Shown piece after piece: positions 16,201 to 22,200 of a DNA stretch of 64,000 nt; position 1 is the first letter of the stretch, and each line of letters starts with the position of its first letter. Source of the stretch: Macrostomum lignano. Taxonomy: Eukaryota. Made by a program: the position numbers and the translations under genes. Below the pieces are notes generated by a model. That model made no database searches. It was not told the origin of the DNA and saw only the letters and a program-made list of their open reading frames with translations. The stretch is taken from NCBI GenBank assembly GCA_002269645.1, contig NIVC01000875.1, forward strand, positions 310,001-374,000, read 5' to 3'.

Positions 16201-19200
16201 CAAAATCTGCAGTCTATCTATCCACAACCTCCAGTCTATCTGTGCACAACCTGCAGTCTATCTGTCCACAACCTGCAGTCTATCTGTCCACAACCTGCAG
16301 TCTATCTGTCCACAACCTGCAGTCTATCTGTCCACAACCTGCAGTCTATCTGTCCAAAACCTGCAGTCCATCTGTCCGCCCAGTTCCTCTCCTCACGGTG
16401 TCCTTGGCTGCATAGCAGTCGGAGAAGTTGGTCCAGCCCTCAGCCCTGGCCCTGTCATTCCTGGCCACCACCGACTCGGGCCAAAGCCAGGTGCCATTGT
16501 CCAGACAGGTGCGCCAGGCCAATTTGCTTCGTGCCAAATCGTTCACATGGCTGGGGCAGGACACGAACACTCGGCTGCCGGCTGGTGCTCCCGGCCAGCA
16601 CATCGCGCTGTCAAAGGCTGGCGGGCAGCGGCTGCTGCTTCCGGTGTAGCTGGATTCGTAGGCCTTGTGCAGCTGCTGGCAGATGAAGCGTTCAACGCCC
16701 ACGCGCCGGTTTTGCTCAACTTCTGAGACGTGCGTTTTCAACTTCTGGAATTTGAGATGAGATGGGATTTTAGGATGGGATCTAGCAAGGATAGGATTTA
16801 TAAGGATCTTATATGAATGAGATCTAGAAGGATGGGATCTAGAAGGATGGGAGCTGAGAAGGATGGGATCTGAGAAGGGTGGGAGCTGAGAAGGATGGGA
16901 TCTAGAAAAATTGGCTCTAGAAGGATGGGATCTAGAAGGGTGGGATCTAGATGGATGGGAGCTGAGAAGGATGGGATCTGAGAAGGGTGGGAGCTGAGAA
17001 GGATGGGATCTAGAAAAATTGGCTCTAGAAGGATGGGATCTAGAAGGGTGGGATCTAGAAGGATGGGAGCTGAGAAGGATGGGATCTGAGAAGGGTGGGA
17101 GCTGAGAAGGATGGGATCTAGAAGGATGGGATCTAGAAGGATGGGATCTAGAAGGATGGGATCTAGAGTGATGGGATCTAGAAGAATGGGATCTTGACAG
17201 ATGGGATCTAGAAGGATGGGATCTAAATAGGATGGGATCTAGAAGGATGGGATCTGAGAAGGATGGGATCTAGAAGGATGGGATCTAGAAGGATGGGATC
17301 TACAGGCGTGGTAGACCTAGACGGATGAGTGGTCTTGAAATATTTGAGCATAAAACTCATGCCTGAACGCGAAACTCTCATTGAAAGCAAAAAAAACAGA
17401 AAATAGCTGCTTTTGAGGCGTTGTTTTTGCCCTATAATTCCTAGACGAAGTGAAATGAAGTCGAACGAAAGCGACTGTAAAAGAAGTTCCCTAATTTTTC
17501 CCTTCTCTTTTTTGTCGGGCTCTTGAGCAGTTCTCAAACTGAGGCGCCAACTCCCCAAACCCCTGCCAGAGACTCTCTAAGTCGCCTTAAAAGCCGCCAT
17601 TTGCATTTTTCTGCCTAAATTGCTGGTCAACCGACACGAGAAAAGCCGATCCATATGAACATCTGGGCGAGAGTCCGCGGCTTCGATCATGGACTGCGAG
17701 AGGTCTGGATTGGACACCAGAGGCTTTGGACCGACCTTGCTTTTTAGTATTTTTATCGCTACCCTTCTACACAATTTTATCCCTCGGATATTATCTTGTT
17801 TATCCTCCTCTCCCTCTCTACCTCCCTCTCTACCCTCCTCTCCCTCTCTACCCTCCTCTCCCTCTCTACCCTCCTCTCCCTCTCTACCCTCCTCTCCCTC
17901 TCTACCTTCCTCTCATTCTCTACCCTCCTCTCCCTCTCTACCCTCCTCTCCCTCTCTACCCTCCTCTCCCTCTCTACCCCCCTCTCCCTCTCTACCCTCC
18001 TCTCCCTCTCTACCCCCCTCTCCCTCTCTACCCCCCTCTCCCTCTCTACCCTCCGCACTCTCTTCACTGTCCTTTGGTTCCCAGCAAGATTGATTTCGTG
18101 GAATCCAAAACCACTCTCTTGTCAGCCAACGGGCATTGAGTGATCCAGTTCGTTTAAAGTGAGAAGTTAGTTCACATTTTAAGAAAATTTTCGAACAGCT
18201 AGCAAAGTAAGAAAAATTCAAACTAAAGCAACCGATAGGACTTTCTTTTTTGTGGCAGAGACTAGTGTACTTTTCTTTGCTAAAAGCATTTTTTCAAGTT
18301 ATTGATCCGTCTCATGCATGTAGCTCAAACTTTCAATTGCACCATTTTTTTTCTCTTTTGCACACAGTGGGCGGCAGTTTGGAAGTTTGTGAAGTTTGTG
18401 ATGTGTAAAGTTTTTGATGTGTACAGTTTGGGATGTGTAATGTTTGCGATGCGTATAGTTTGTGATGTATATAGTTTGTGATGTGTAAATTTTGTGATGT
18501 GTAAAGTTTTTGATGTGTATAATGTGATGTGTCAAGTTTTTGATGTGTATAGTTTGTGATGTATATAGTTTGTGATGTCTAAAGTTTTTGATGTGTATAA
18601 TGTGATGTGTAAAGTTTGTGATGTTTATAGTTTGTGATGTTTAAAGTTTGTGATGTGTAAAGTTTTTGATGTGTATATTTTGTTATGTGTAAATTTTGTG
18701 ATGTGTATAGTTTGTGATGTGTAAATTTTGTGATGTGTATAGTTTGTGATGTGTAAATTTTGTGATGTGTAAAGTTTGTGACAACCCGGTCCCTCAAGAT
18801 AATCTGCTAAGACTAAATAAAAGCTCTATGTTTAATTGTTTCATGTGAACTAGTCTGGCTTAACCGGTTTCACATATTTCAATTAATTTGCACAATTTCT
18901 TTGCTGTTTACCAGCCTTGAACGATAATTTTTCACCTGCAGAAAATCTCATTTTTTATACTTAGCCTACAGGAATTTCTCTTTTAATCCTGTTTAAATCT
19001 CGCACTCACGCACTGCTAATGCGGAGAGTGTTTTGTGTCTTGCAATTGCGTCAGACTTTTCAGGGGATTTTCCAATTATAAAGGCACATAATTGTTAGCT
19101 AATGATGCAAGAATTGCTTTAGGGCGAGCTTGACCTGTTTACGAGAGCTTTGGAGGAACTGCAGGAAATTTCTGGACACTTCTAAAAGCATGATTAATTA

Positions 19201-22200
19201 GAGTCAGATTTCTGTGAAAGGGTTTAAAAGAGAGGTTCTTGAGAAACCTGGCTTAGATTAGGAATTATTCAAGCGTGATAATGGCCATTCCATTTTGAAT
19301 TTTGGGGGAGATTCAGACACAGGTGAGGGAGATTCAGACACAGGTGAGGGAGATTCAGACACAGGTGAGGGAGATTCAGACACAGGTGAGGGAGATTCAG
19401 ACACAGGTGAAGGAGATCCAGACACAGGTTAGGGAGATTCAGACACATGTGAGGGAGATCCAGACACATGTGAGGGAGATCCAGACACAGGTTAGGGAGA
19501 TTCAGACACATGTGAGGGAGATCCAGACACAGGTAAGGTAGATTCAGACACAAGTGAGGGAGATTCAGACACAGGTTAGGGAGATTCAGACACATGTGAG
19601 GGAGATCCAGACACAGGTAAGGTAGATTCAGACACAAGTGAGGGAGATTCAGACACAGGTTAGGGAGATTCAGACACATGTGAGGGAGATCCAGACACAG
19701 GTTAGGGAGATTCAGACACATGTGAGGGAGATCCAGACACAGGTAAGGTAGATTCAGACACAAGTGAGGGAGATTCAGACACAGGTTAGGGAGATTCAGA
19801 CACAGGTTAGGGAGATTCAGACACAAGTGAGGGAGATTCAGACACAGGTGAGGGAGATTCAGACACATGTGAGGGAGATCCAGACACAGGTTAGGGAGAT
19901 TCAGACACATGTGAGGGAGATCCAGACACAGGTAAGGTAGATTGAGACACAAGTGAGGGAGATTCAGACACAGGTGAGGGAGATTCAGACACAGGTTAGG
20001 GAGATTCAGACACAAGTGAGGGAGATTCAGACACAGGTGAGGGAGATTCAGACACAGGTTAGGGAGATTCAGACACAGGTTAGGGAGATCCAGACACAGG
20101 TGAGGGAGATTCAGACACATGTGAGGGAGATCCAGACACAGGTTAGGGAGATTCAGACACATGTGAGGGAGATTCAGACACAGGTTAGGGAGATCCAGAC
20201 ACAAGTGAGGGAGATTCAGACACAGGTGAGGGAGATTCAGACACAGGTTAGGGAGATTCAGACACAGGTGAGAGAGATTCAGACACAGGTGAGGGAGATT
20301 CAGACACATGTGAGGGAGATCCAGACACAGGTGAGGGAGATTCAGACACAGGTTAGGGAGATTCAGACACAGGTTAGGGAGATCCAGACACAGGTGAGGG
20401 AGATTCAGACACATGTGAGGGAGATCCAGACACAGGTTAGGGAGATTCAGACACATGTGAGGGAGATTCAGACACAGGTTAGGGAGATTCAGACACAAGT
20501 GAGGGAGATTCAGACACAGGTGAGGGAGATTCAGACACAGGTGAGGGAGATTCAGACACATGTGAGGGAGATCCAGACACAGGTTAGGGAGATTCAGACA
20601 CATGTGAGGGAGATTCAGACACAGGTGAGGGAGATTCAGACACAGGTTAGGGAGATTCAGACACAGGTTAGGGAGATTCAGACACAGGTGAGGGAGATTC
20701 AGACACAGGTTAGGGAGATTCAGACACAGGTGAGGGAGATTCAGACACAGGTGAGGGAGATTCAGACACAGGTGAGGGAGATTCAGACACATGTGAGGGA
20801 GATTCAGACACAGGTGAGGGAGATTCAGACACAGGTGAGGGAGATTCAGACACAGGTGAGGGAGATCCAAACACAGGTTAGGGAGATCGAGCCTCACCCT
20901 CTGCGCCATGGCCTCATACAAGTTGCCAGGCGGACAGTCGCTGTAATTGCTGTAGGAGCTGTCAGTCACGATGAGTCTCTTGTCGGTCAGATTTGACGCG
21001 TTCAGCTCCAACCTGCCCGGGAAATCCCAGGTCCCGTCCTGGCGGCATCGGCGAGTGGCGGAGCCGGACTCGAACACCCCGACGGGGCAGGGCTGACTCA
21101 CCGTCAAGCCCGCATCTGTCTCCGGCCAGCAGATGAAGCCGTCAAAGGTGACGGGACACTGCGGAGGCGACCGTGGCATTGTTGAGTTTCTTGGCGGGGT
21201 CAGCAGCCGACCCAACAGTTTAATTCGAGCTTTCAGCGCCGCTTCCAGGCAGTCAGCTTCTCGCTGCTTCATCGCTGGGAACACAGACTCCAGCTGCATC
21301 ATCTGCCAGTTGGCCTGCATGGGCGGATGAGGGGAGCTTTAAGGCCGGAGTCTGTGCCGCTTGGGAATTGCCGGTCCGGCACGCTGAGGAATATTAAAAT
21401 CTGATGATATTTGTTATGATGCCTGGCGGGGATGAAGAATAGCCTGTCAGGCTTGCGATTCTCGGGGATGTGGTGCCACTTTGCAGTAGCTCTGGTGCCC
21501 CCTGCAGTAGCTTTGGCGGCCCCTGCAGTAGCAATTTGGCGCCAACTTGCAGTAGCTTTGGCGCCACCTTGCAGTAGCTTTGGCGCCCCCTTGCAGTAGC
21601 TTTGGCGCCCCCTTGCAGTAGCTTTGGCGCCCCATTGCAGTAGCTTTAGCGCCAAATTGTAGTAACGTTGGCGCCCCCTTGCAGTAGTTTTGGCGCCCCT
21701 TTCAGTAGCTTTAGCGCCAACTTGCAGTAGCTTTGGCGCCCCATTGCAGTAGCTTTAGCGCCAACTTGTAGTAACGTTGGCGCCCCCTTGCAGTAGCTTT
21801 GGCGCCCCCTTGCAGTGGTTTTGTGGCCCCTTGCAGTAGTTTTGGCGCCCCCTTGCAGTATCTTTGGCGCCCCCTTGCAGTAGCTTTGGCGCCCCCTTGC
21901 AGTAGCTTTGGCGCTCCCTTGCAGTAGCTTTGGCGCCCCCTTGCAGTGGTTTTGTGGCCCCTTGCAGTAGTTTTGGCGCCCCCTTGCAGTATCTTTGGCG
22001 CCCCCTTGCAGTAGCTTTGGCGCCCCCTTGCAGTAGCTTTGGCGCTCCCTTGCAGTAGCTTTGGCGCCCCCTTGCAGTAGCTTTGGCGCCCCCTTGAAGT
22101 AGCTTTGGCGCCCCCTTGCAGTAGCTTTGGCGCCCCCTTGCAGTAGCTTTGGCGCTCCCCTGTCTGTCCGCCTTTGTTATCACCGCATCAGCACAGCTTG

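Follow-up and report, generated by a model that had tools for sequence, protein, structure and literature searches.

Can a class B1 G protein-coupled receptor (GPCR) carry two complete hormone-binding domains in front of a single transmembrane bundle, and what would the second domain be for? The question is raised by a gene of the flatworm Macrostomum lignano on contig NIVC01000875.1 (GenBank assembly GCA_002269645.1). We analysed a stretch of 64,000 nucleotides of this contig, positions 310,001 to 374,000 of the forward strand, which we call the window; all positions given below are counted from its first letter. In the two-domain model of class B1 receptors, one extracellular domain (ECD) catches the peptide, and activation of the seven-transmembrane (7TM) core follows. 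This model is put to the test by receptors with an extra ECD, and we know of none for which a structure has been solved or a mechanism worked out. A first-pass annotation of the window had described a receptor with two tandem domains at this locus. The explanation that we consider the best overall, and fairly likely to be right, is that the locus holds an intact B1 gene of the parathyroid hormone (PTH) receptor-like (PTHR-like) type, in which the ECD was doubled by an old tandem exon duplication, and that a tandem receptor of 603 amino acids is its main product.

The gene lies on the minus strand and has 10 exons, with GT-AG borders at all introns and a single clean open reading frame (ORF) for 603 amino acids. 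A putative signal-peptide exon is followed by one exon for the membrane-distal hormone-binding domain (HRM1), one exon for the membrane-proximal domain (HRM2), and then seven exons for the 7TM bundle. The 7TM exons were located by tblastn with PTH2R sequences and with two near-identical UniProt fragments from M. lignano, and the splice sites of the HRM exons were taken directly from the DNA. The HRM1 exon has the acceptor ...ccgcccatgcag/GCC and the donor AGG/gtgagg, and the HRM2 exon has the acceptor ...aaattccag/AAG and the donor ACC/gtgagg, where the slash marks the exon border. The first-pass annotation had set its limits at 16397, where the HRM2 exon has its exact 3′ end, and at 21314, which is exactly where the HRM1 exon has its 5′ end. 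Its phase arithmetic is also correct, since the phase-0 joins of exons 1 to 4 leave the combinations 1-2-3-4, 1-3-4, 1-2-4, and 1-4 all in frame.

Exon 1 was found by a scan as the sole combination of an ATG, a hydrophobic stretch, and a consensus phase-0 donor upstream of HRM1. By inspection, its product has the typical n/h/c layout of a signal peptide. The ATG at 21320, which would make HRM1 the first coding exon, was also considered as the start, and it would give a product without a signal peptide. We rejected this start for the main model because exon 1 supplies a putative signal peptide, with a perfect phase-0 donor, and because the 'TE/A' junction with the upstream exon recurs in the paralog A0A1I8IK20 described below. 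Four UniProt models of M. lignano (A0A1I8JMD4, A0A1I8FA57, A0A1I8G6K6, and A0A1I8INI7) match the 7TM exons almost exactly. They are C-terminal fragments (locus 6705-15123, minus strand), several of them with frame errors or intron read-through, and neither HRM is present in any of the four. The 10-exon model corrects the current annotation of M. lignano, in which the gene exists only as these C-terminal fragments.

The Pfam HRM family (PF02793, gathering cut-off 26.2 bits) matches each of the two exons separately, with 56.1 bits for HRM1 and 50.5 bits for HRM2. The first-pass annotation had expected two PF02793 matches and one PF00002 match, and the scan of the spliced protein gave exactly two HRM stretches and one 7tm_2 domain (PF00002, 2.5e-55, residues 287-531, profile positions 4-250 of 250). 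Neither GAIN/GPS nor any further Pfam family was found in the 603-residue protein at E ≤ 0.01. Inspection of the residues in both exons agrees with the profile matches. Each domain has exactly six Cys together with the motifs FD, CWP, CP, G-T-W, and N-(Y/F)-S-D-C, all of which had been named in the first-pass annotation, and these are laid out as an amphipathic N-terminal helix with Cys1, C-x-x-FD-x-x-x-CWP, CP, C-x-x-x-GTW, and N-(Y/F)-SDC. The core Asp, Trp, Pro, Arg, and Gly-Trp residues are intact in both. The two domains are diverged from each other, as had been stated, with an identity of 28%, and HRM1 has four N-glycosylation sequons.

The last Cys of HRM2 is separated from the 'GY' of the first transmembrane segment (TM1) by 22 residues, so the earlier description of HRM2 as abutting TM1, with no GAIN domain, is borne out. 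The region from HRM2 to TM2 aligns to the ECD-to-TM2 region of PTH1R as one piece, and TM3-TM7 align as a second stretch. An AlphaFold2 (AF2) model built from a 121-sequence alignment has a mean predicted local distance difference test (pLDDT) score of 82.2 and a predicted template modelling (pTM) score of 0.70. Both HRMs are predicted to fold confidently, each as an N-terminal helix and two β-hairpins, with pLDDT values of 78-90 for HRM1 and 85-94 for HRM2. The values are below 50 for an insert specific to HRM1 (residues 122-142) and 71-77 for the blocks 143-170 at the inter-domain junction.

Is the second domain a recent accident or an old part of the receptor? The first-pass annotation had proposed a search for orthologues with a doubled HRM; a paralog with this architecture was found by an exhaustive phmmer search with the 603-residue model against 1.84 billion representatives. 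The top match is the M. lignano protein A0A1I8IK20 (P0009), with 5.7e-137 and 53% identity, in one stretch (query 37-400) that covers HRM1, HRM2, and TM1-3. A0A1I8IK20 is encoded by a separate gene; its model is partly mis-predicted, and no characterisation of it was found in the literature. By Pfam, it has two HRMs and a 7tm_2 domain in the same HRM1-HRM2-7TM order. Between the window gene and A0A1I8IK20, the two HRM1 domains are reciprocal best matches, and so are the two HRM2 domains. Next after the HRMs of the paralog come single ECDs from PTHR-like receptors, those of molluscs among them, and the partner HRM of the same protein is absent from the 12 best matches of each HRM.

All 12 Cys residues are kept in A0A1I8IK20. 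The inter-domain distance from Cys6 to Cys1 is 33 residues in both paralogs, while the other loops vary by 2-5 residues. The HRM1 exon is 40% and the HRM2 exon 45% identical to A0A1I8IK20, that is, the two have diverged about equally, and the correctly predicted 7TM exons of the paralog are 57-84% identical to those of the window gene. Since the doubled architecture is shared with a diverged paralog, both domains appear to be old and held under constraint, and these comparisons place the duplication of the ECD before an old duplication of the gene. It should be noted that a word-indexed protein search missed A0A1I8IK20 despite the 53% identity, so the negatives of that search are weak; the paralog came up only in the exhaustive search. 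With HRM1+HRM2+TM1-2 as the query, the word-indexed search gave no match at E ≤ 1e-3, a weak negative from an index that missed A0A1I8IK20, and with a two-sequence profile it gave only P0189, a frame-shifted M. lignano model of the paralog.

To which receptors is the gene related? Among sequences in the PDB, it matches PTH1R with 7.6e-61 and PTH2R with 2e-56, as compared with 3e-50 for the secretin receptor and 1e-47 for the glucagon receptor. When the AF2 model was used in Foldseek, the top 14 matches were all PTH1R or PTH2R, with E about 1e-23, and these cover about 390-400 columns, corresponding to one ECD plus the 7TM bundle. The nearest proteins from outside Macrostomum, which belong to ticks, molluscs, and a nemertean, mostly bear the names PTHR-like or secretin-receptor-like; vertebrate PTH2R is also among them. 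The 7tm_2 domain, the six-Cys ECD directly before TM1, and the lack of GAIN/GPS identify the protein as class B1. By its best matches in sequence and in fold, the receptor belongs with the bilaterian PTH-receptor group. The calcitonin receptor (CTR) group has the architecture in common with it but not the ancestry, and the gene is not a member of that branch.

The first-pass annotation knew of no described receptor of this kind, and this part of it does not stand. An HRM profile built from these sequences was scanned over the 150 best hits of the exhaustive search. Four HRMs are present in the calcitonin-type receptor of the damselfish Stegastes partitus (XP_008287491.1) and two in the CGRP-receptor-like protein of the shrimp Penaeus indicus (XP_063595560/61), both confirmed by Pfam. 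The HRM profile also found two HRMs each in the damselflies Ischnura elegans (XP_046396658.1) and Hetaerina americana (XP_071447515.1) and in the mayfly Cloeon dipterum (XP_065351371.1). Thus, public annotation of fish and arthropods already includes B1 receptors that have from two to four tandem HRMs. Multiple hormone-binding domains have also reportedly been described in the pufferfish calcitonin receptor, by Nag et al. in 2007. What remains of the earlier interpretation is the presence of two complete, diverged ECDs that look functional and one 7TM bundle, an arrangement that is conserved in a paralog.

Multi-HRM proteins among the 150 best hits are confined to the CTR branch, the Macrostomum paralog, and one fused model from Haliotis; every other HRM-bearing hit has a single HRM, which corresponds to HRM2. 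The Haliotis protein (P0010) was rejected as a double-HRM PTHR, being a fused model of tandem genes with two HRMs and a duplicated partial 7TM. Among these hits, therefore, only the Macrostomum pair is doubled within the PTHR branch, as far as sequence matches place its members. Since the known multi-HRM receptors all lie in the calcitonin branch, the doubling in Macrostomum would most simply be a gain independent of theirs. The architecture is unusual but not unprecedented, and it does not define a new receptor class; the locus adds an independent instance, in the PTHR-like rather than the calcitonin branch. We found no paper on the Macrostomum doubling, nor one that connects Macrostomum with PTH receptors, and literature searches on a doubled HRM were swamped by other meanings of 'HRM'.

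Are the two HRM exons joined in one mRNA? The HRM2 exon has no Met before Cys1, and a scan of intron 2 found no alternative signal-peptide first exon with a usable phase-0 donor. HRM2 thus lacks both a start codon and a signal peptide, and intron 2 offers no exon that could supply them, so that HRM2 has to be joined by splicing to exon 2 or to exon 1. By eye, the sites bordering exons 2 and 3, which have GTGAG consensus donors, match those of the constitutive 7TM exons in quality. No feature was found that would prevent joint inclusion: the frame is kept, the intron is 4.15 kb long, and the splice sites are compatible. With strong sites, an intron of 4.1 kb, and no frame penalty, there are no sequence signs of regulated or mutually exclusive splicing. 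The phase 0-0 symmetry of the two exons stems from tandem exon duplication; it permits splice switching and is no evidence for it. We infer that the exons are included jointly, and we consider it quite likely that this tandem form is the main product.

How might such a receptor work? We propose that an old tandem duplication of a single exon encoding the whole ECD doubled the extracellular part. The main product would then consist of the signal peptide, HRM1, a linker of 33 residues between the flanking cysteines, HRM2, the stalk, and the 7TM bundle. Because its position and its spacing to TM1 match those of the ECDs of one-domain B1 receptors, HRM2 would have the canonical role of capturing the C-terminal helix of a PTH-like or PXXXamide-type peptide, and it would then deliver the N-terminus of the peptide into the 7TM core. 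HRM1 would be a retained accessory module on a short linker of conserved length, serving either as a second peptide-capture site or as a regulatory cap. As a second capture site, it may raise affinity, or it may widen or narrow selectivity. A bolder proposal, which we regard as possible but rather doubtful, is that the PTHR branch independently evolved, in macrostomid flatworms, a two-headed receptor in which both heads bind ligand. In a single tandem receptor, the ligands could be different peptides or two sites of one long peptide; alternatively, regulated skipping of the symmetric exons could let one gene yield three receptors that differ in ligand specificity. Since the two domains are old, diverged, and conserved, and are found in a genetically tractable flatworm, the role of a second ECD is directly testable here.

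Several observations weigh against the tandem receptor as we have described it. The paralog A0A1I8IK20, which joins both HRMs, is a genome-annotation model that lacks TM4 and has TM1 in the wrong frame. The protein searches retrieved no transcript-derived sequence over either HRM exon, although these negatives are weak. The roles given to HRM1 and HRM2 were assigned from position and by analogy. Finally, either HRM exon alone would give the normal layout of a receptor with one ECD: exon 1 would end about 20 residues before Cys1, and 22 (HRM2) or 28 (HRM1) residues would separate Cys6 from the 'GY' of TM1. The last observation is also what would be expected if the HRM exons were alternative cassettes, mutually exclusive or individually skipped, so that one-ECD receptors with two different heads dominate and little or none of the tandem form is made. 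The exons are indeed adjacent and homologous, with the same phase 0-0, and the M. lignano paralog model P0189 begins exactly at the start of the HRM2 exon. However, P0189 is a frame-shifted fragment, which makes its start uninformative, and nothing enforces exclusivity, since joint inclusion is in frame across a 4.15-kb intron and all sites are strong by eye. The two exons also differ in length (139 versus 116 codons) and are only 28% identical, while the spacing between the domains is exactly conserved between the paralogs. Furthermore, annotation presents the other multi-HRM B1 receptors as proteins with their HRMs in tandem, and the paralog model joins both HRMs. We consider it unlikely that alternative cassettes account for the locus.

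The lack of HRM1 from every existing M. lignano protein model of the locus would be explained if this domain lay outside the receptor, either as a decaying pseudo-exon or in a separate transcript, such as one for a secreted one-HRM protein from exons 1+2. In addition, the reading frame stays open past the donor of exon 2 into an array of 21-bp repeats. An open frame in this repeat is, however, expected by chance, since two of the three frames of the unit have no stops, and HRM1 is a clean ORF of 139 codons with consensus splice sites and with its six Cys and core residues intact. HRM2 needs an upstream coding exon, and in the paralog, which is only 53% identical overall, HRM1 is kept at 40% identity with identical Cys spacing and is joined to HRM2. 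We regard a place for HRM1 outside the receptor as very unlikely. That the doubling is an artefact of assembly or annotation, with two genes or haplotypes collapsed into one locus, is less probable still, to the point of being hardly credible. M. lignano has a genome rich in repeats and fragmentary early gene models, and the Haliotis hit P0010 is a fusion of just this sort; but the HRMs, at 28% identity, are not haplotype copies, the window holds a single set of 7TM exons, and the same arrangement is found in the diverged paralog. Conservation in the paralog thus disfavours both the pseudo-exon and the artefact, and a tandem receptor encoded by one intact gene remains the explanation that we prefer. 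The coordinates of this gene are collected in Table 1.

Table 1. Exons of the tandem-HRM receptor gene, with the intron between the HRM exons and its tandem arrays. ICL, intracellular loop; ECL, extracellular loop; TRF, Tandem Repeats Finder.
Feature	Position in window	Strand	Evidence or remark
Exon 1: start codon and putative signal peptide; ends in phase 0	24645..24710	-	donor GAG/gtaagt
Exon 2: HRM1, membrane-distal; 139 codons, 417 nt, phase 0-0	20898..21314	-	Pfam HRM 4.9e-15
Intron 2: between the HRM exons, 4.15 kb, mostly minisatellite arrays	16745..20897	-	TRF
Tandem arrays in intron 2	16772-17302, 17822-18054, 18388-18781, 19306-20887		TRF
Exon 3: HRM2, membrane-proximal (canonical position); 116 codons, 348 nt, phase 0-0	16397..16744	-	Pfam HRM 2.8e-13
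Exon 4: stalk and TM1; begins in phase 0	15197..15303	-	tblastn to PTH2R
Exon 5: ICL1 and TM2	15018..15123	-	tblastn
Exon 6: TM3, ICL2, and start of TM4	13607..13766	-	tblastn; identical in UniProt fragments P0001/P0002/P0190
Exon 7: TM4, ECL2, and start of TM5	9650..9783	-	tblastn
Exon 8: TM5 and ICL3	7562..7653	-	tblastn
Exon 9: TM6, ECL3, and start of TM7 (...FNSFQ)	7334..7484	-	tblastn
Exon 10: TM7 and C-terminal tail to the stop codon; 3′ end uncertain	6705..6935	-	tblastn

Two exons of the model have possible variants. For exon 4, a second phase-0 acceptor is possible at 15351. The 3′ end of the gene may also differ: a donor may lie after ...GAENG, where other models splice, and one model has a tail that matches 4209-4156, pointing to an additional small 3′ exon near that position. 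The C-terminal tail of the M. lignano model P0190 has no match within the 64-kb window.

The window is dense in tandem arrays with periods of 4-200 bp (63 rows in the TRF output, some of which overlap and represent the same array). One or more such arrays are present in most introns of the receptor gene, among them every long intron. In intron 2, a 21-bp minisatellite of about 75 copies (19306-20887) begins about 10 nt past the HRM1 donor, and the frame of HRM1 is open through it, giving an ORF of 683 amino acids (19269-21320, minus strand) with HRM1 followed by LPHLCLN heptads. Retention of the intron would make an HRM1-heptad protein; the open frame itself is probably due to chance, because of the two stop-free frames of the repeat unit. 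One 15-bp minisatellite unit (AGGATGGGATCTAGA / AGATCCCATCCTTCT) occurs both at 16772-17302 in intron 2 and at 8835-9583 in intron 7, in opposite orientation. From their sequence, these arrays could form a long intramolecular duplex in the pre-mRNA that brackets exons 3-7.

Two neighbouring coding segments were also noted in the window. At 30472-31797 (plus strand), there is an open segment of 442 codons between stops that contains the whole of the Pfam domain IPK (inositol polyphosphate kinase; 5.8e-39), which marks a neighbouring gene on the strand opposite to the receptor. An ORF at 61629-62090 (plus strand) has sperm-tail PG-rich (SHIPPO) repeats (4.1e-10) and represents an ODF3-like gene.

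How does the Macrostomum receptor compare with known systems? HRM-bearing adhesion GPCRs of the latrophilin and CELSR type likewise have an HRM followed by a class B 7TM domain. However, their HRM is separated from the 7TM by a GAIN/GPS autoproteolysis domain, and they have adhesion modules as well, whereas in the Macrostomum receptor there is no GAIN and HRM2 abuts TM1. The calcitonin receptor of S. partitus is closer in architecture: several HRMs in tandem precede its single 7TM, and GAIN is absent. Its branch is that of the calcitonin receptors, and its four repeats are very similar, whereas the Macrostomum protein belongs to the PTHR branch and its two HRMs are 28% identical. The arthropod CGRP/calcitonin-receptor-like proteins also have two HRMs and one 7tm_2 domain; they are RefSeq predictions from the calcitonin/DH31-receptor branch, and no functional study of them was found.

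The vertebrate receptors PTH1R and PTH2R (with solved structures such as 8flu, 6nbf, and 7f16) are collinear with the Macrostomum receptor over HRM2, the stalk, and the 7TM bundle. Motifs of the PTHR type are common to both, namely RLHCxRNxIHxNLF in TM2, FNSFQGFFV in TM7, and LVLVFG in TM6, the last as in PTH2R. By contrast, ECL1 is very short in the Macrostomum receptor. The vertebrate receptors have one ECD, while the Macrostomum receptor has a second complete HRM on the N-terminal side of it. The ECD of vertebrate PTH receptors is split over several exons, whereas each HRM in Macrostomum is a single exon. The nearest relatives from outside Macrostomum in the exhaustive search are the protostome PTHR-like receptors, among which insect PTHR members (iPTHR) have been deorphanised with iPTH/PXXXamide (PMC7224569). 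These receptors and that of Macrostomum are probably one orthology group, for which PXXXamide/iPTH peptides would be the likeliest class of ligand.

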